Shown in pieces: positions 1-11,600 of a DNA stretch of 64,000 nucleotides. The stretch is taken from contig NW_003314326.1 in the NCBI RefSeq assembly GCF_000143415.4, positions 310,001-374,000 of the forward strand. The letters are read 5' to 3'. The stretch is from Selaginella moellendorffii (Eukaryota; Plantae; Lycopodiophyta). Position 1 is the first letter of the stretch. Every line of letters begins with the position of its first letter. Position numbers and translations under genes: made by a program. Under the pieces are notes generated by a model. It was not told the DNA's origin. It made no database searches and saw nothing but the letters and a program-made list of their open reading frames with translations.

Positions 1-336
1 CTTAAATTCCTTCTTGAATCCATATCAAACTTCATCTCAGACTTCATCTTAAATTCCTTCTCGGACTCCATCTCAAACTCCATTTTGAACTCGTTTTTAA
101 CACGTCACGACACTTGCTATATATCAGTCCTTCTTGTGACCCTTTTTAGAGACTTATTCACTGATTGCTTTATGCTTATTCCTTGAGCACTTTGTTCGAA
201 GTTCCACTCCCACTCTCAAATTTCTAAGTCAAAACTTTTGGTCCAAACATGTTACGTTTGTTGAACTTCTTCTTTGGCCACTACTATGTGGCCCCCTTTC
301 TACTCCACTTTGGGGCTCAAGGATTTATGTCTCACA
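1..336. mobile_element. Decayed, window-truncated copy of the right end of the solo-LTR family at 30634-32472
   Basis: Aligns by eye to about 32140-32472 (gttccactcc..ctctcaa, ggccactac, terminal gtctcaca) with many C>T/G>A changes. Confidence 0.85.
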
Positions 337-3300
337 AGTTCCTTACATAGTAGTGGAAGTAGAGGCTTTTATTGGTTCATTGGGTCTTGTAGACAAGCAT
401 TTAAGTCTATTCTACGGTGTAGTTTGTTTCCCCACCTATTTCTCTTAACTTCTAGCAGCTTGGTTTGCCATATTTCCTGGTGTGTTGTCTTTGAGAGTTC
501 TAGTTTTCACATGATTTAGCTAGTGGTTTTAGAGAGCTCTTCATCATAGATTGTGGCCAACATTCTTCTTGACTAAGCATTGGTATTTTTATGCTTTAAG
601 GCATTCATCTTTCCACCAATTTCCCTCCATTATCACATTTTTTCACACTTTCCACTATTGGGTAATACACTTCCATTCCATGGCAAAACTTAAAGGGAAA
701 TTTAGGGTACTTCTTGGAGGTTTGAGAACTTTAAAGGTTGTAATTTAGGTTTGAGTCTTAACTTGGGTTATTTTTCTATCTTTCTCTTCCTTCTTCTCTT
801 TTCTTTATGTTTCTTTACATTTTTCTAGCTTTTTCTTTCACTTTCTTCTTCTTTTTCATGCTGGACCAAGGGTCTAGTTTGACTACAAAGTTTTGCACTA
901 GGTTTTCCCTCTATTTTTAAACTTCACACTTTTCACTCTCTTTCTACAGTTACCTCTATTTGGCATTTATTTTCTCTTTGGCTGCCAATTTTACAGCTGC
1001 AGATCATGGGTTCTCTTCATATTAGGGGGTTCTTGATCCACCTAGAGCACAAATATTCTCTAAATATTCCCTTTAGGGAATATTCTAAGTATGGGAGAGA
1101 ATATTCTATATGGGAGGGTATATACCTTTCTTCTCTGTGACTTTTAACAATGATAAGGGCATGATGTATTGATTTTTTTGGCTATAGAAGATTTTGAGTG
1201 TGTTTGAGAGCGAGATGATGTGTAAAACACACACCACTTGAAGTACTCTTCTTGTGTTATAGTTCCTTCAGACTTGGTGCACTCACTCACACTCCATCTC
1301 ATTTCCTTGAAGCTACCTTAGAGTTGAATCAATCATCGTCCTTGCATTGATCAATTAGAAGAATGCCCTTGTAGTTTGCATATCACTATCGCAAGTGAGA
1401 TTATGAGATCCTTAGTCTGTTTACCATCAACCTTGGATCTCCAGGGAGAAGGATAGTTTTAAAAATCTAAACCCCAAATTGAGATGTGGATTATGCAAAT
1501 GCCCCAAGGGGAACACCATGGATTGCAATCTTCAAACCACCCCACTTCCTTTGACTTTTTGTTAAATCTCATTATTTAAGCTTATGTGGCAAAAGAGAGA
1601 AGAAAACATGATAGGGCAGGGAAATAGCCAAATGCTCATATGTGCTAGCTGTGCTTCTTGGCCTAAAGTATTAGCCACTTTCAAGAAGTAGAATTTTCGA
1701 AGTGTAAAAGGCTCAGTTGACTTTTGCCCTTAGGGCTCATACGGCTAGCAAATTTGAGTAAATAATCATTTAAAAAGGCTAAAAGTTGTAGCAAGCAATT
1801 ATGGATATGAGAATTTTAGAGAAAAATACCTATAATCATAGTCAAAGATATTGATTAGACTCTTGAAATCATTATCACTTTTACTTTAATGAGTTTGTAG
1901 CTACTTGGAATTCTAGTATTGAAATTGAAATTAATAAGAAGTGAGATAAATCAATTTTTTGGACATCAAATAAGAAGAAACAAAACATATCATGATGTTT
2001 AATTTTCAATGCCTCGAAGCCACTGCATATCCCACCTAAGCTTGTGTTACTAGATCTTATAGACAGTTCAAATGTTAACTAAATGCCTTCGTAGATATTA
2101 GGTTAAAACATGAATATACTTAATATCCATTCATATGTCGGCATATTTATTTTTATGCTTTGATTTGAATTTTTGATGTGCAATGATTATGATGATGATA
2201 AACTAAATTTTCCATGCTATAATTACCTATAAGCTAGTTTTCCTTCTAAGGATATGAATCTCTTGTCTTTATACTTTCAACCTTAAGATTGTTAAGTTTT
2301 ATATAAATTGTGAAAAATTATAGCATATGTCCTTTACCCTATAGTGATTTACCATAAAATAATCATGTAATGGAACATACACCCTTGGCCACGTGTCTAA
2401 AGGCAACAGAGTGAACCCAAATTTCAGAGCCTTGAACCATTAAACAAAGCAAAACTTCTAAGCATTCAGCCAATAAATAAAGGAATTAAAGCATGGAACA
2501 ACTCTCAAGTGTTCGGCCCAAGGAGTGGAGGGATAGGAGCATAGAATATAGTCTTAGAGCATTCAACATCTTAATGCCAAAACTAGCATACAAAATAGAA
2601 TCAAATGAAATTTAGCACAATTTCAACATATCAATGGCCTAACATGAAGATATAAATATTTCATTAACTAACATAGTATAGAATTTGAGGTTAGACCCAA
2701 GTTTGAGACAGAACAAAAACAGGTACATAAACAAGGAGCTAAATTATGCCTCAAGCTGGTTAGCCATGCTAAACCTACTCACTATCCCTATTATATATTC
2801 CACAGAAATAAGAAACACTTAAGTTTTTATTTAGTTGTTGATAGATCTTAATATTGATGTATTTTTTATAATTTAGGAAAAAAATGATGGATAGAGGATC
2901 ATGTGGACAACATTACTATAGCAATATATCGTAAATATTACATTACCTTTTTTATAAATAGAAAGATCTACTGAAAACTAAAGTGTTATATAACACTTTA
3001 TTTACAAGGGAGGCCACTTTATTATGCTTGTTGCCAAATTGTCAAATTGACCCATAATGTTTGTAGAATATCCTGAATTTGCCATATGGCCTATGTGGAA
3101 ATGTTCCTCTAAGAATGCAAAAGTGGCTTAGGTAGAGGCTAGATGCTACTAAATTCACTTGTTAGCTAGAAAGATCAAGTGATTGAATTAGAAGCCTTAT
3201 TCCATGTTGCAAAAGAGGAATTTTGCATGAAAGAGGATACTCATTCTAGCTCTAAAATTCTCTCCTACCCCAAGAGAACACTCTAAAAATTTAACAAAAA

Positions 3301-3480
3301 CACTTTTTAAATTCAAAGCTACTTTATTGCCACTATTTAATGATAGAGATGCTTACACATACGCTCAGGGCCACCATGTTGCCATTGGTAGGCTATGTGA
3401 TTTCTCACTTATTCTACCAATGTTGTTAAACATTATTAAACACTTTAAATGCTTCAACAAAGACCCTTCTCAGTGAGGTA
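337..3480. mobile_element. AT-rich block of heavily decayed LTR-retrotransposon remnants
   Basis: CpG-depleted and without long ORFs. Possible traces of a zinc knuckle (about 600-680, -) and RNase H (about 3050-3420, -). Hosts a solo LTR. Confidence 0.5.
2319..2804 (-). mobile_element. Decayed solo LTR, reverse-strand homologue of 28795-29349
   Basis: The reverse complement aligns with 28795-29349 end to end. Ends are TATAGC (decayed TGTAGC) and CCACA. Flanks AAAAT/GAAAT resemble a 5-bp TSD with one G>A. Confidence 0.8.
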
Positions 3481-4046
3481 GTTCACTGATGGGATCACTA
3501 CTGCTCCAGCCTTGGGTTTGAAACTTCTATTAGAGAGACTTTGAAAGTTTGGTATGTACCTATGGTTTGCCTTGCAGTTTTTTTATCTTGCTCAAAATCT
3601 CTGCAGAAACGATTTTTTCACCTTCGTGGTCTCGTCCGGTCATGATATTTTCTTGCACGTTGTGTAGTTTCTTTTGGCTATGGCTGCTGGAGCTCCAAGA
3701 GATGAGGTCAAGCCTCTGCTCCATTATGGGAGCAACAAAAATCATTCATGGATCGTTTCAAGAAAGCGCTTGTCCTTGCTGCTCAATTTCGCAGTTCCTG
3801 GCTTTCGCAGTCACACTAGTCTCTCGAAGATTTCAAAACACTCTCGCCCGGAAGAACTCTAATCACGTCCACCGACGGCAATCAGCCACGAGTCTTCCTG
3901 GCTGTAACAAGTGCTTTGCGGCACAGGGAGCAAACATCTACCAGGGTCATGATCGTAGTACTAACGAGAATTTGATCGTCACCTAGCTCGCAAATGAGCT
4001 CTCTTTTATTTTTATGGCTCCACAACTCGTTAATGCCACGAACTTT

Positions 4047-6201
4047 CTAGTCCATATCCATGTCTTCAAGATCTTGACGCTTGGCTTTGAGATCAGTAAG
4101 CATCTGCAGGTTGGTAGAATTAGCAGGAAGCTTGTAGATCTTGCACAGGGCCACGAGTCGACTTCGGTAGCCCTTTGTATCCTCGAGCATGCAAATCTCG
4201 TCGAGCTCTTGTAACGCATCAAGGAACTTACCCTCATACACCAGCTTGCGCTTACCCAACTGAATCTTCTCTTCCGTAAGATGTACTTCCGGACCATCGT
4301 CCTCACCTTGAGCTGGCCCGACACAGCCCAAGGCATCCTCCCAAGTTTCCGGCCGGTCCAAATCCACAGGAACAACACCCGCCAACTTCCTAGGGTTGAG
4401 CTGCGTAACATAAGGACTACCTTGCACTGGAACGGCCACCTTGCACTGCAGAACACCTACAAAACGAAAGAAAAAACTAGATTCTTTCAGACTCTAGCAG
4501 CACAAAGCTCACCTTCCACGGCTTTCTGAGAAACCTTTCCAGACACTCGGTATGGCTGAAACTGGAAGCCCGAGAAAGTGTCCGGCGGCACGAAAAACAA
4601 GAGGATGGTGTCGTCCTTCTCAGTATAGCCGGGGTCGTATTCCTGCCTCCAACGTCTCAGGGCCTGCATTGCCTGTACCAGATGCTTGACTGCCGGTTTG
4701 TGATCACGAGAAACCGTGGCCTGGCCCAAAGTGCGTGGCAACAGAACGAAGCCAAAGACTGCATTGTTCTTTTTCAGTGGTCTCCACAGGTACTTGGCAG
4801 CATCCATACCTGAAAACACAACAAATAACTATTCCGAGAACGAAGAGCTCACCAGCCGCAAGTAACGCATCTTCGAGATCTCCTTCATAGTAACGCAGTA
4901 AGAGACCGCCAGGGGATACAGATTCTACCCCGGGAGCACCGTGGCAGCGTCCACAGCGAAACTTTGGGGTATATATAACGTCCACCCGTACGCACTTGGT
5001 ATGATACCAGCTTAGACAAACCCCGCATTGGATCCTCTGAGCTTTCCCGCGCTCGTTCTTCTGGTGGCAAGCTCCACAGTAGGCGGAATCAATCTGCAAG
5101 CACAACTAAGTGACAAGCCTGAGACTTGAAAAGCTTTACCATCGGCAAGGCCATAAGGTTGTGCTGCAAAGCCTGACCAATTGCATACTGCTCGAAGACG
5201 AAACCCCGCAAGCTTGCGTATTCCTTGAACGGCTGAGTGGCCTCGAGAAAGCTTCTGATCTTATCCACGTTCCTAGTACACAGGTACTGCGCATACATGT
5301 TGGCCACCTTATCCGAGCAGAATGTGTAGTAGAAGCGTCTGAAGGATCCGGGCTTCAACGCGAAGTGAAATAGCCTCCACGACACGTTCTGCGTGGTTGC
5401 GGAGTTTTGCAGGATGGCTGTCACATTCTTGAGCTTCGTGTTGGCAAGGCACTTGCAAACGTCGGAAGAAAAATCCTCCTCGGTGAGGTTTTCAGCCTCG
5501 CGATCCCACAGAAACCGAGGAACGCCTCCAAACCAGTCGTATGCTAAGTCGGCAGCATCTACTCTTCGGTATATGTGCTCCGCTTTCACCGACAGGTTCC
5601 CATCCGGCCGAGGCATCAAATCGGCTCTCCTTTTCCAGCTTTGCACAAGAGCGTCGAACTCTTGCTTGTCCCAAACCGGGAGGTATCTAGTGTAAGTCAT
5701 GCGCAGCTTCCTCGCGGCCTTTGTGTTGCCCTCTTCTGGAGAGGCCGCAACCACAGCTCGAACTCCAAGCGTCCTGCCAGGTGCGATCTTCTGATCGATC
5801 AGGTGGTAGTCGACCTCGGTCGACTCGATTTGTTCAAGAGGGTAGTCTTTCTTGTCGATGACCCTGAGAGAGGAGCCATTGAAGTCCCAAATGTAGGTCT
5901 CCGATTCGTACAGGATGCGCGAGCCCCGCTTGTCGATGCCCGTCCTGATGATGAAGTACCACAAGAAGGCCGATTTGCCAACACCGGAGTTGCCATTCAA
6001 GTGGCACAGAGAGCAGTCCTCGATCGCCAGAGTTGCGACGATATCCTTGTAGAGGGCATCGAACACCTTCCGCACATAGAGCGTCTCAATACTCCTGTGC
6101 AAAGAATACCTGTAAACTCCTGCTTCCGGTAGCTCCAGAAAATTCCCGGCCGCGTAAGACTCACGCCCTCCAAGGAGCGCCCGCGCCCACCATTCCTCCA
6201 T
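4047..6201 (-). CDS. Crinkler/RHS-type P-loop NTPase + PHD finger + REase-like domain + SAP-like tail (4 exons, 669 aa)
   Basis: Exons 6201-5140, 5093-4853, 4809-4513 and 4456-4047 join in frame through GT-AG introns of 46, 43 and 56 nt. Motifs: LYVRK, Walker A GNSGVGKS, Walker B YHLID, VVAASP, YLPVW, FGGVPRF, GFVFE, C4HC3 PHD, QATVSRDH. Confidence 0.8.
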
Positions 6202-6687
6202 CGCCAGGGAAAAAAGCTTACGGCTTAAACCCTAAACCACACATTTTGTCAAAACGGAAGTTAGATTAACAAACTTCTATGGCTACATGAGCGCGGCTAT
6301 TTGAGGCTCAAAGCACGCAGGTGCCACATCCATGACCTAAATAGATATCCTTAATTGCGATCATGCTGTAATTTGCTGTGAAGTTATCAAAACTCATAAG
6401 CGAGTTGCCTGTATCGCACAAACTTTAGTAGAATTGCTTTCATGAAATGGAATTTGTCACCTGCTCAAGCATCTGATCCTGTACTAGTGGTGGAATGGTA
6501 ATTGAGGGAACTGGTACCGGCAATGGCCCCATGTAGAGCTTCAACTCAGTGCATGGAAGTCGAGGAGAAGCTGGTGTATGTGGCCTCATCCAGTGGAATC
6601 ACAAAGGAAAGTTTAATTCAACAAAAGGATGGAGTGAAGGGTTTCGAATGTATAATAAGGATAATAGATATAAATTTAATTTGATGA

Positions 6688-6690
<3 letters not shown>

Positions 6691-6752
<62 letters not shown>
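6691..6752. repeat. (AT)n microsatellite, about 31 units
   Basis: Directly visible. Confidence 0.98.
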
Positions 6753-6754
<2 letters not shown>

Positions 6755-6999
6755 CCTAATGACTCACAAAGGCTAAACAACATTGAAGGCACACTCTACT
6801 CTGACAAAGTGATATTTAATTGAATTCAATTTTACAGCATTACATAATCTCATAGGATAAATTTTAATAATATTTTTTGTTATACTGAAAAGTTCTTAAC
6901 AAAGGTTTTCTTTAGTTTAAGAGTGTCTAGAGCTTTTTAAATTAGCATATTCATGGAGCAATTTCAGGAGCTCCAGCTCCAAGAAGCTTTTCAAGCAGG

Positions 7000-8538
7000 T
7001 GTATGAAAGATGTGGCAGGCTTGTCTGTACCCTGGAGGTGTTTTGAGCACTATGATCTTCTCTTGAAACAACATGATCCAAGCATATGCTGAGATTGGCT
7101 ATCAAGATTCCGATCACATGCACAGAGAGATACTGTTGCGTGGATGGCTTATGCGCTGAAGGGTTATGGGAGACGTGAGGAAGGTTTTTTCGGACATGCC
7201 CGAGAGGAACGTGGTTGTGTGGAATGCAATGTGTCAAGATGATGCTGCGAATGGGTACCTTGAGGAGGCAAAGATGGTGTGGAGAAGACTCCTCAGACGG
7301 ACTTTGTGACTTGGACAATGCTTATTACTGTTTATGCACAGAATGGCGAGATAGGAGAGGCAAAGTTGGGGTTTGATGCAATGCCGGAGCGCAACGAGGT
7401 GTCATGGAACGCAATGGTGAACGCAAATGCCCAGAACGGACGTATCGATGCCACTAAGCTGCTCGTAGAGAAAATGATCTCATTGTATGGAACACAATCA
7501 TTCAAGGCCCCGAAGTTTGTGATGCGGAGAATTGTTTCCTTGGAATGCCCGAGAAGGATGTCATATCTTGGACTCTCATGGTTCCTAGATACGCAAAGAG
7601 CAGGTATAGGCGAAAGAAACCTTTGATGCTATGGCAGAGAGAAACCATGTATCGTGGAACGCGTTGCTCCAAGGCTATCGAGCGGCCGGGCATGGCACCG
7701 AATTGAGGATGACGTTTGAGAAGATGCCCCTCAAAACAATGTCGAGTGTCACGGTGGTGATGGAGTTCGAGTCGAAAATGGGAGAGATGGTGGAGGCTAA
7801 GCAAGTGTTTGACGATAATGGGATTGGTGGATCAAGCGTGGTTTCGTGGACAACCATGGTGGTGGCTTACGCTCACCAGGGCATGGTTGCCTGGAACACC
7901 ATGGTCCACCAATATGCCCAGCACGGCCATTACATGCTCGAGGCCAAAACCATCCCCCGGCGTGATGTAGTTTCGTGGAACACCGAACAATGGCGATCTC
8001 GCCGCAGCTCTCAAAGTTTTCCACACCATGCCAATGAGACACACGGTTTCCTGGAACGCCACGGTGACCATCTACGCATCCAGTGGATTCACGGAAGAAG
8101 CTCTCGAGATCTTCGAGCAAACTCCCGGCAGCAACAACACCATAACCTGGGGACGTGATGCTCGAGGCCTACACCGCGCGGGGCCTGGGAGAAGAAGTTC
8201 TGGAGCTCTTCCGTCCCGAAGAGGTGGCGTTCGTGAACATCTTAAACTCGTGTAGCCACCTCGGGCTCCTGGCGGAAGCTCGGCTCCAATTCCAGTCCAA
8301 GACCACAGCCTGGCTCCTGCGAGGGAGCTGCGTGGTGGACATTCTGGGCCGGGCTGGCCGGATGGGCGACGCGGAAGAGCTTTTAAAAGCCATGCCTTTC
8401 GTCCCGGACGAGGTGGTGTGGGCCTCCTTCCTCAACTCGTGCAGGATCCACAGTGATTTGGAGCGCGGGGGCCGAGCTGCCAAGCTCAGGTCCAATGACC
8501 CCAGCCACTATCTTCTCTTGGCAACCACCATATCCTGA
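7000..8538 (+). pseudogene. Frameshifted PLS-class PPR pseudogene
   Basis: PPR motifs (MPERNEVSWNAMV, CVVDILGRAGRMGDAEELL..MPF.PD) are split across ORFs 7279-7626, 7631-8158, 8028-8255 and 8155-8538. Confidence 0.85.
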
Positions 8539-8601: not shown

Positions 8602-8674
8602 GGGGATGTAGCTCAGATGGTAGAGCGATCGCTTCGCATGCGATAGGTAAGGGGATCGATGCCCCTCATCTCCA
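8602..8674 (+). tRNA. tRNA-Ala (anticodon CGC)
   Basis: Acceptor stem GGGGATG/CATCTCC, anticodon arm ATCGC-TTCGCAT-GCGAT, T-arm GGGGATCGATGCCCC, and a Pol III terminator TTTTTT at 8681-8686. Confidence 0.95.
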
Positions 8675-11600
8675 CGCACATTTTTTGTCACTCCATACTT
8701 TTTTTTTTCGTCTTCAGCGTAGCATAGCATCTGCCAAACAAACGAGCCAGTTCATGAGTAGCCAAAGAAAAAGAAAAAGAAGACAATGGTTCTTCCATGT
8801 TGAAGTACTCAATGTTTGTTGCCAGACAAGAGAGAGAGAGAGAGATCGCCCTGGCGTCGATCATCTTACTGGGGCGAATTGGCCGAGGACGACGCCCGAT
8901 CCATCTTCACGCTCCGGCCCACACCAGAAACCCATGAGAACCTCACTCGGCCTCTCCACAAGGTAATCCGGTGAAGAAGAAGACGAATGATGGAGCTTCC
9001 ACCGACCCAGTTTATGAGGAAAATGATCTCTGCTCGTCACCACACCACGAGGAGGATTGCAAATGCAGCAAAGCCAATCCAATCCTTCTTACCTCAGCAC
9101 AGATTTCCCTGCCCTAAGCTCTCGCTGCTGCCGAACGAATCCCCCGACCGAGTGCCTCCGAAAGCCGGCGCCTACCCACGGGCACTTGATCCTGCAAGGC
9201 GGCGGCTGCCAGGAAATCGCAATCGCAATCGCCATCGTCATCGCTCAAGGACGAAGAACCCTAAAGCGCGCCAAATGCCGCCAAGAACCCTAAAACAGGG
9301 GAACCACTCCATTGCGCATTGATGAACGAAGCAGCGCATGAATTTGGCGCTGCCGCAGTCGATGACGATGGATGCGATGATGAGAGAGCGAATACGAATT
9401 GTTTATCGCGCAGCAGCCAGCTCTCTGGAGTCCAATTGAATGGAACAGAGCTTTCAGAGCCATCATCCACACATATATAAAAGCTTCCTCTGCCGCTGCC
9501 AATCTCTGCTTAACTGTTTTCCAATTTGTCACCATCACAACCATCAAGCTGCTGCCGCTACCACTGTGTGGAGTGGATTGCATTGCTGCCATTGCCAGCG
9601 GCATTACCTATATGGGCTAGATCAGCTCGCAAGCGATTGGAAATTGGATTGGAGCGGACCAATAGCAGTAGCAATTGACAATTTCGCTCAATTCAATGGC
9701 GCTTTCCACATCAATCTAAGTTTTGATTAGGGTTCTTCGTTGTCACCAACAAACAAGTTTCACGGTCAAAGATTTGAGAGGCATCCGTACGCCCCGGGGG
9801 TGTGACAGGGATGGGCAACGAACCCTGGCCGTCCATCGAGCTGGCCCTGGAAGGAATCGAACACGCGATCGGGCAAAATAATGTTGTCTGGAAAGAGATG
9901 TTTGATTTCTTTCTGGTGTCATGGTTCCTACACACCTGGCGCACTCACTCACACTCCATCTCGTTTCCTTGAAGCTACCTTGGAGTTGGATCGATCATCG
10001 TCCTCGCATTGATCGAATTGGAAGAATGCTCGATTGATCCTTGTAGTTCGCGCATCGCTACCGCGAGTGGAATTACACGAGATCACGAGATCCCTCGTTC
10101 GTTTGTCACCAACTTGGATCTCTGGGGGAGAATGCCATGGATTGCGATCTCCAAACCACCCCACTTCCTTTGTTCCTTTTTGTTTCGTCGAGTGGAAGAG
10201 AAGAGACGATGATCGCGTGCGTACGGAGGGCGAGCCGTTAATGCCGGTTTGTGGCCATGGTGGCTCAACACTCGCCCAGGAGAGTTTGTCCGCCACGTGT
10301 CGCGCATGTGACAGCCAGTACACAACGCACGTGGCCGCTTTCTTACCGCCGGCTTTTTTACCAAAGGTTTTTAATTTCCCCTTGTTAACGCTCCTCGTAC
10401 TTTTCTTACCGTAGAGCTCTTTCTTTTTCACCCTGCCAGTGTGAACGCAAGCAAGCGTAAACCTTCTTCTTCCTTCTTCCTTCTTTCTCTGGCTATGGCG
10501 GATCGCCTTCTCTCTCTTCTCCAACAAGTACTCTTTTCTCCTCGCGATTCGCGACGAAGAATTTAAAACAGAGCCGAGGGTTTTGTCACCGCATTGTTGT
10601 CGTTTGATCCAGCGGATCGACTTCCCCGAAGCGCTAAAAAGAGAGAGCGCACCGAGAGATCGATCGAGCTGGTTCTTCTACTACTCAGAGGAGAAAAGCT
10701 TTGGATTCTTGTGAGCGAGCGAGCGAGCCGAGGTCCCAGAGTTCTTGGTTTGTCGCATGATGGTCAGCATCCGAGGAGTTTATGGCAGGTCCCAATCCAA
10801 GGCTTGACTGCGAACACTAAATGCTTGCATCCAGGTTGATGATCCTTACGCTCTTGCTGTTCATCCATCGCTTTCTGGTTTGCTCCGCCTTCTCTCCTCC
10901 ATCTCGATCCTAGCAGCCGCAGGCAGCAGCAGCAGCAGCAAAACCTAGCAGCAGAGAGCCCTGGAGCTCTTTTTCTTTCTTCCCTGCCACCACTGCTTCT
11001 TCTCTCTGCGGATCATCCAGAGGTATAAATGCTCGCTATTCTTGCTTTCTCCGCGAGCAGCAGCAGGGTACTTGTCTCGGACTCTCTCAATTTCGCATTG
11101 CTCGGGCGGACGATGAGACTGTCACTAAATCGTAATACCGGTCACTAGGAAGAGCTCTCCTCCTCTCCATATCTCCATTTCTTCCTCGGCCGTATCTCGT
11201 TCGTTTCGCTGGTGCTGGTGATCGTCCAAGCTGTGGTGGTGTCTCTCTCACTCTCATCAATCACTCCTCCATCATCCGGCAGCTCCCAAACAAACCACAT
11301 TTGTGTGCGTGATTGGTACACTCCACTCTCTCCTCTGTGCAGCGCGAGCGCGCTTTTGACTGGCCGGGGCGGGCCGCGATCCATCTCAGCTCTCCGCGTG
11401 TCTGCTCCGGGCTGCCAAAAACACCAAAGTTTCTTTCTTGCTGGATCGATAGCTACCACTCCACGCCTCTCCTCTCATCGCCAAGATCACTGAGCTTTTG
11501 GATCGATCCAGTTTTCCATCATCCATCTATCCATCCATCCATAGCGCCGCGAGGACACGAGTCCAGGACTCTCTTTCTCTGATCATCCCTGTCACACCTT

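Follow-up and report, generated by a model that had tools for sequence, protein, structure and literature searches.

The window analysed here, a stretch of 64,000 nucleotides from the lycophyte Selaginella moellendorffii (contig NW_003314326.1, positions 310,001 to 374,000, forward strand), carries on its minus strand the four-exon gene SELMODRAFT_446106, at 4047-6201. This gene is a header-less, host-resident member of the Crinkler/RHS-type family: a P-loop nucleoside triphosphatase (NTPase) is followed by a restriction endonuclease-like (REase-like) domain, into which a plant homeodomain (PHD) finger is inserted. Joining the four exons gave 2010 nt, or 669 codons, with no internal stops. Each exon translation agreed at 100% identity with the deposited protein SELMODRAFT_446106 (P0012 hereafter), over residues 1-354, 355-434, 436-533 and 535-669 in turn, so that the model of four open reading frames (ORFs) and three introns put forward in the first-pass annotation of this DNA matches the deposited 669-residue protein residue for residue. 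The same annotation had taken the architecture to be undescribed; this did not hold, because the gene model is already deposited, uncharacterised, along with at least eight paralogs named "PHD-type domain-containing protein", which is also all that the UniProt label of P0012 says. The gene is laid out as follows.

3976..6228, minus strand: transcribed unit with approximate mRNA ends, from the RNA contigs of four runs
5140..6201, minus strand: exon 1, codons 1-354; P-loop NTPase, winged-helix-like linker, and first helix and strand of the REase-like domain with the conserved E337
5971..5994, minus strand: Walker A GNSGVGKS, residues 70-77; G70, G73, G75 and K76 invariant over 54 homologs
5794..5796, minus strand: Walker B Asp136 (HLID); D in 53 of 54 homologs
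5094..5139, minus strand: intron 1, 46 nt, GT..AG, phase 0; spliced in 4/4 RNA runs, position kept in paralogs
4853..5093, minus strand: exon 2, codons 355-435; PHD finger, then the conserved strand LLLRYYEGD
4944..5078, minus strand: PHD finger of C4HC3 and Alfin-like type, residues 360-404; Pfam PF00628, 25.2 bits
4810..4852, minus strand: intron 2, 43 nt, GT..AG, phase 1; alternatively retained according to RNA contigs, position kept in paralogs
4704..4706, minus strand: predicted premature stop under intron 2 retention, ending the ORF 4704..5105
4513..4809, minus strand: exon 3, codons 436-533; core strands of the REase-like domain
4751..4753, minus strand: Gly454 codon GGC, at the site of the family's near-invariant Asp in the homolog alignment
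4715..4723, minus strand: Q464-A-T466, QxT strand of the REase-like core; Q in 44/46 and T in 44/46 homologs
4457..4512, minus strand: intron 3, 56 nt, GT..AG, phase 1; spliced in 4/4 RNA runs
4047..4456, minus strand: exon 4, codons 535-669 and stop; last REase-like strand, disordered linker 546-610 and helical tail
4062..4175, minus strand: predicted helix-loop-helix, residues 628-665, a candidate HeH/SAP-like unit; block-mean pLDDT (predicted local distance difference test) about 60-87

Splicing and expression of SELMODRAFT_446106

RNA contigs from four runs in four studies covered just about 3976-6228, and the zero depth on both flanks argues against genomic DNA contamination of these contigs. 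The introns that they skipped have GT..AG ends when read on the minus strand, seen as CT..AC on the opposite one; the contigs have no orientation of their own. Introns 1 and 3 were skipped in all four runs. The long contigs of runs X1, X5 and X9 kept intron 2; one X6 contig lacked it, its shorter arm extending 30 letters from the splice joint, and an unspliced contig occurred in the same run. The proposed junctions were thus borne out, with the second being alternative. Given that contigs demonstrate the presence, not the absence, of a splice form, the safe statement is that both intron 2 forms exist and that the retained form is abundant.

Retention of intron 2 shifts the frame to the stop at 4704-4706 and predicts an NTPase-PHD product lacking the REase-like core. 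As this stop lies ~190 nt upstream of the last junction, the retained transcript could be a substrate of nonsense-mediated decay (NMD). Use of the spliced frame is supported by the conservation of intron positions and phases and by the ratios of non-synonymous to synonymous substitution rates (dN/dS) of exons 3 and 4, 0.17-0.39 in that frame. All three introns keep position and phase in paralogs down to 33% identity; their GC content is 0.38-0.43, against 0.53 in the exons. Both haplotype alleles carry an intact ORF: P0012, and P0011 (LOC9639910, 669 aa), which lies on the other haplotype's scaffold and is 98-99% identical.

An antisense ORF at 5575-6132 within exon 1 was treated as spurious, the minus-strand frame being conserved in many homologs and the skipped introns having their GT..AG ends on that strand. 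Upstream of the gene start by ~0.5 kb lies a (TA)n microsatellite (6688-6753), at which RNA reads seem to be cut. Short RNA contigs of X6 and X9 at 6909-7000, with loose ends at 6936 and 6966, may represent an exon of a neighbouring transcript.

Membership in the Crinkler/RHS-type family

An exhaustive phmmer search with exon 1 returned 125 matches at E<1e-3. Beyond the Selaginella paralogs, these comprised a hornwort transcript, chytrid, Physarum and metagenomic proteins, a Diversispora protein with a Crinkler N-terminal domain and a Chlamydomonas "Crinkler (CRN) family protein". Proteins matched with E values of 1e-8 to 1e-12 included ones bearing the Crinkler N-terminal domain and ones labelled "Crinkler (CRN) family", and the Crinkler-family proteins found by exon 1 sequence came from fungi, algae and slime moulds. 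We aligned 54 sequences (the query and 53 homologs), among which Pfam nSTAND3 matched 21, RHSP 11 and the Crinkler header 1. A common motif series ran through the family: GNPGIGKS, hhhhD, SSP, MPxW..E, GGIPR, LRGxLFE and Y..P...N....D........FQxTVS..H. Within P0012, Walker A GxxGxGK[ST], Walker B hhhhD, SSP, PxW..E and GGxPR were all present, and they were near-invariant over the 54 homologs; the NTPase and REase motifs listed at first pass are in the sequence.

Subsequently, the fold was compared. An AlphaFold model built on a 62-sequence alignment (pLDDT 79; predicted template-modelling score, pTM, 0.65) placed the NTPase first, then a winged-helix-like unit at about 278-321, an alpha/beta domain at 326-545 interrupted by a less confident insert at 355-415, a disordered linker (546-610) and terminal helices. 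Searching Swiss-Prot models, the top two hits were Phytophthora infestans CRN16 (Q2M3Z7; E 1.6e-21) and CRN15 (Q2M3Z8; E 4.7e-21), over residues 4-554; the next matches, to NLR, STAND and AAA+ proteins, were ~15 orders of magnitude weaker, at about 1e-5. Residues 4-554 superpose on residues 168-615 of CRN16 with template-modelling (TM) scores of 0.49/0.52. Since the alignment begins at residue 168, it lies after the effector header and covers the C-terminus of CRN16, an NTPase-helix-turn-helix-REase arrangement. Both oomycete proteins share with P0012 the motif series of Walker A/B, SSP, PxW, GGxPR, FE helix and D...QxT...H. The sequence and fold matches together support the proposed layout of a Crinkler/RHS-type NTPase with an REase-like domain.

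In contrast to CRN16 and CRN15, SELMODRAFT_446106 is a plant nuclear gene rather than a pathogen effector, and its product has neither a signal peptide nor the LFLAK/DWL (ubiquitin-like) header; it also carries the inserted PHD finger, an added helical tail and an Asp-to-Gly change. The N-terminus is not hydrophobic, and PF20147, the Crinkler header (LFLAK/DWL), gave no match in a scan of ten Selaginella proteins, P0012 with nine of its paralogs. The absence of a header reported in the earlier annotation is consistent with these results, which indicate that the protein is not a secreted effector. Pfam RHSP (PF07999) likewise gave no match at E<=1 in P0012 or the nine paralogs, being matched by more distant homologs alone, and single-exon Pfam and Protein Data Bank (PDB) sequence searches with exons 1, 3 and 4 returned no matches.

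Other known systems were compared as well. For the trypanosomatid retrotransposon hot spot (RHS) proteins (PF07999), RHSP-annotated clusters ranked among the closest both in protein-language-model features (0.95-0.96) and in shape (TM 0.56); however, the Selaginella protein lacks the RHS_N domain, and organism and genomic context differ. The NTPase part weakly matches the STAND/AAA+ NTPases NRC2, NOD2, RPP1, Apaf-1, CED-4 and AVAST5 (E 2e-5 to 5e-4), but with TM of about 0.2, without a repeat sensor domain and, in P0012, without an nSTAND3 match. AACRNL, a teleost Crinkler-like "epigenetic parasite", is described in PMC12957317 as a header-degenerate Crinkler relative that acts on chromatin in a free-living eukaryote; unlike the Selaginella protein, it is there an ADP-ribosyltransferase effector rather than an NTPase-REase, adjoins hAT elements and has no PHD finger. 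Zhang et al. 2016, as cited in PMC5289972, described Crinkler-like proteins from land plants. Our literature search found no paper linking Selaginella, Crinkler and PHD.

A PHD finger inserted into the REase-like domain

The exon 2 piece matched the Pfam PHD family PF00628 at 25.2 bits (cutoff 24), or 20.8 bits in the context of the whole protein, and all eight C4HC3 zinc ligands are present in P0012. A family profile matched the BPTF PHD at 6e-7, as well as PHDs of Alfin-like proteins, TAF3 and PHF2/8; when one sequence alone served as the query, the closest solved PHDs were the Arabidopsis PHD-finger proteins 1we9 and 1wee and ALFIN-LIKE 3 (E 0.0012-0.016). The insert of ~55 residues occupies its own exon in all paralogs examined and sits in a hairpin at the N-terminal edge of the REase-like domain. 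The insertion is visible in the spacing between E337 and P445, which is 109-115 residues in six of seven aligned PHD-bearing Selaginella proteins and 80 in P0010, whose PHD exon model is shortened. Homologs from outside Selaginella in which this region aligns, the hornwort protein among them, mostly have 52-60 residues here and never more than 81. Pfam match, profile and solved-structure matches and spacing agree that a PHD finger lies inside the REase-like region, as had been read from the sequence at the outset.

Searches with the PHD-containing region returned S. moellendorffii proteins alone. The resemblance to host plant PHDs suggests that this lineage-specific insertion arose by exon capture. 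With the plant Alfin-like PHDs (ALFIN-LIKE 1/3, 1we9) the Selaginella finger shares the signature CGAC...C..C..W(F/Y)H.KCV; they were its best PDB matches by sequence, and AL3 and AL1 its matches by fold. It differs from them in being inserted in a nuclease-fold domain, in lacking the Alfin N-terminal domain and in its variable Tyr359. Alfin-like PHD fingers (ALFIN-LIKE 1/3, 1we9) read H3K4me3/me2, and the SELMODRAFT_446106 allele has both cage-type aromatics, Y359 before the first Cys ligand and W383 before the His ligand; position 359, however, is Cys or His in the other allele and several paralogs, so that this subtype is uncertain for the Selaginella finger.

The C-terminal tail is less clear. 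For residues 586-669, the language-model neighbours were SAP, Rho_N and HeH domains at 0.71-0.78 (SAP 25/100), values in the range that provides leads only, while Pfam and PDB profile searches with six family tails, including three tests with hidden Markov models (HMMs) for SAP/HeH, gave no relevant match. The SAP/HeH-type tail proposed at first pass is accordingly reduced to sub-threshold language-model neighbours, no HMM match and a predicted helix-loop-helix at 628-665.

Loss of a conserved aspartate in one Selaginella clade

Modelled separately, residues 322-545 reached a pLDDT of 85.6 and a pTM of 0.82, and matched Crinkler-family C-terminal domains with E values down to 4e-10. Against Crinkler/RHSP atlas clusters the model scored TM 0.56-0.64 over essentially all non-PHD residues, with TM 0.63 to the Crinkler C-terminal domain. 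Its order of secondary-structure elements fits alpha-beta-beta-beta-alpha-beta, and the domain-spanning matches of VIA, which works independently of Foldseek, were mostly PD-(D/E)xK nucleases: McrC, R.BspD6I, SdaI, NucS, FokI, SgrAI, NgoMIV and Cfr10I, with HamA, Can2, NucC and EcoRV as further examples. A PDB sequence search with a profile of the domain returned no match.

Residue 454, just ahead of the second core strand, is Gly in the window protein, whereas Asp occupies this site in 46 of 47 aligned homologs. Gly454 is common to P0012, P0011, P0010 and P0001; Asp is found in P0014-P0018, P0020, P0024 and the hornwort protein, and in every aligned homolog outside the Gly-bearing subclade. 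In the tree, the Selaginella family is monophyletic (99/99) and the Gly-bearing proteins form one nested, derived clade (100/99), indicating that Asp-to-Gly was a single derived event. P0010 and P0001 have also lost Gln464, and P0010 His471 as well. P0012 keeps the other core residues (E337, Q464, T466 and H471) and all NTPase motifs intact.

The Asp-to-Gly change makes nuclease activity of SELMODRAFT_446106 doubtful and weakens the earlier description of the product as an NTPase-nuclease. Given that Asp was lost while purifying selection was kept, the REase-like domain of the Gly454 clade is more probably a DNA-binding or assembly module than a cutting enzyme.

In the paralog model P0018 (SELMODRAFT_409910) the PHD exon is missing and Glu337 is replaced by Gln, which may be a real loss or an annotation artefact.

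Genomic context and selection

The family comprises at least eight full-length paralogs in S. moellendorffii in addition to fragments, and no second gene copy was found within the 64-kb window. No direct or inverted repeats of >=25 nt flank the gene, except the TA microsatellite, and the flanks of five paralog loci share nothing beyond 31 nt of 3' untranslated region (3'UTR). These loci sit among differing host genes: eIF4E; alliinase and a kinase; lipoxygenase; and UFL1 with RING genes. Synonymous divergence (dS) between paralogs ranges from 0.5 to saturation, and dN/dS from 0.14 to 0.35, including the REase-like half and the tail, which indicates purifying selection. Against the paralog at dS 0.5, dN/dS is 0.35 and similar in each domain; against P0010, that of the REase-like domain is 0.36, not above the other domains. 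The RNA contigs differ from the window at 15 sites, 10 non-synonymous and 5 synonymous, mostly matching the P0011 allele. The checks on copy number, shared flanks and dN/dS suggested at first pass thus returned a multi-copy family under purifying selection whose five compared loci share 31 nt of 3'UTR at most. Such a picture is that of an old family of host genes undergoing birth and death, not that of an active transposon. The alternative of a mobile element, raised in the first-pass annotation, is unsupported: terminal inverted or direct repeats and shared flanks are absent, the neighbours are host genes, and selection is purifying.

Directly downstream of P0014 lies a frame-broken, unannotated family copy (L001:8314-9710, plus strand), ~29% identical to P0012 residues 33-550 and without an obvious PHD, which resembles a tandem duplicate that has decayed. 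Some members or fragments of the family have adjacent locus numbers and share a scaffold (409318/409319/409321, 428583/428586 and 424597/424599); these may be local clusters or split models.

The surroundings of the gene in the window are as follows.

1-4000: AT-rich, GC 0.36, with a single ORF of >=70 aa in 1-3500; the putative decayed transposable-element DNA of the first-pass annotation
7631-8155, plus strand: ORF with pentatricopeptide (PPR) repeats, on the 5' side of the gene
8602-8675, plus strand: tRNA-Ala (anticodon CGC), 2.4 kb from the 5' end of the gene, Rfam 60 bits
12734-13675, plus strand: DUF620 ORF, on the 5' side of the gene, E 3.5e-74

Contamination was rejected as an origin of the locus, on the basis of the 1.13-Mb scaffold, the PPR, DUF620 and tRNA-Ala neighbours, the short introns of Selaginella type and the second haplotype allele.

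A putative chromatin-directed NTPase and its alternatives

We favour, with a probability of about 0.6, the explanation that SELMODRAFT_446106 encodes a domesticated, header-less Crinkler-type NTPase aimed at chromatin, with a nuclease fold that has lost its Asp. In the Selaginella lineage, the family would have expanded and gained a plant Alfin-like PHD as a separate exon. The protein would act in the nucleus, where the PHD finger, and possibly the helical tail, may anchor it on chromatin; the likeliest targets would be H3K4 tails, whether methylated or unmodified. With its motifs intact, the NTPase could work as a nucleotide-dependent switch in the manner of related STAND-like conflict NTPases, and the REase-like domain without Asp would contribute DNA binding or assembly. 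Retention of intron 2 may tune output by yielding either a truncated NTPase-PHD product or an NMD substrate. The biological role of such a protein might lie in genome conflict, defence or chromatin regulation.

Several observations weigh against this explanation. The VIA Z scores were 3.5-6, below the tool's caution level of 8, so the REase fold of the C-terminal domain is probable but not proven; a Foldseek search of the 322-545 model against the PDB returned PHD fingers and weak XPF/Hef matches, with no significant non-PHD match. Position 359, Tyr here, is occupied by Cys in the second allele and by His in three of the paralogs, a variability that leaves methyl-lysine reading by the PHD uncertain. 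Intron 2 retention dominates the assembled contigs of three of the four runs, and the ratio of 10 non-synonymous to 5 synonymous differences hints at relaxed constraint. Finally, E...D...QxT...H is a putative active site, and the cost that D454G would impose on it is inferred.

The product might instead have kept NTP-regulated nuclease activity and serve in conflict or defence as an effector targeted to chromatin, with Gly454 tolerated or offset by another acidic residue. Retention of E337, Q464, T466 and H471, purifying selection on the REase-like half (0.36 against P0010) and the intact NTPase motifs would fit such an enzyme; however, Asp is present in each aligned homolog outside the subclade, and the loss of Q464 in P0010 and P0001 and of H471 in P0010 fits a progressive loss of the catalytic site in the clade, and we consider this alternative unlikely. 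A broader proposal, which we hold to be more doubtful still, is that the family forms a chromatin-guided conflict system, in which a Crinkler-type NTP switch with a nuclease-fold effector would have taken up a host Alfin-like PHD exon and so be directed to H3K4-marked chromatin, serving as domesticated immunity against transposons or viruses or acting as a selfish "epigenetic parasite". Under this proposal the Gly454 clade would supply catalytically dead regulators or decoys that partner the Asp-bearing paralogs, and intron 2 retention would switch between full-length and NTPase-PHD forms.

Less likely again is that the gene is functionally dispensable and decaying towards a pseudogene. The lost Asp, the frequent retention of intron 2 with its premature stop, the excess of non-synonymous differences from the RNA contigs (10 versus 5) and the birth and death within the family, exemplified by the decayed tandem copy at L001:8314-9710, are what decay would produce; conversely, the ORF is intact in both P0012 and P0011, the gene is expressed in many runs, dN/dS of 0.35 against the paralog at dS 0.5 is alike across domains, and the NTPase and PHD ligand residues are all kept. 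A currently mobile Crinkler/RHS-type transposon gene using its PHD finger to choose insertion sites is highly improbable. The family is thought to be transposon-derived (Zhang et al. 2016, by its title and thesis as given in PMC5289972), it is multi-copy in the genome, and the left flank of the gene is AT-rich and poor in ORFs. Nevertheless, terminal inverted or direct repeats of >=25 nt are absent around the gene, the five loci share no flanks beyond the 31 nt of 3'UTR, and the paralogs are old (dS 0.5 to saturated), have kept their introns and lie in differing host-gene surroundings.

Implications for the Crinkler/RHS-type family

NTPase-nuclease modules of the Crinkler/RHS type are familiar chiefly from the effectors of pathogens and the subtelomeric genes of trypanosomes. 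Here, a plant lineage has kept a header-less module under purifying selection and expanded it; the module gained an exon resembling histone readers, and one clade dropped the Asp. New at this locus are its identity, the finding that intron 2 is alternatively retained, the conservation of the exon structure, the affinity of the PHD finger to the Alfin-like type and the clade-specific loss of Asp. The gene would illustrate cleanly how a conflict-system gene can take up a PHD finger of its host as an exon, and the Asp-bearing and Gly-bearing paralogs offer a natural pair, active-like and dead-like, for comparison. Collectively, our findings present the Selaginella family as a tractable, non-pathogen system for asking what this module does on chromatin.

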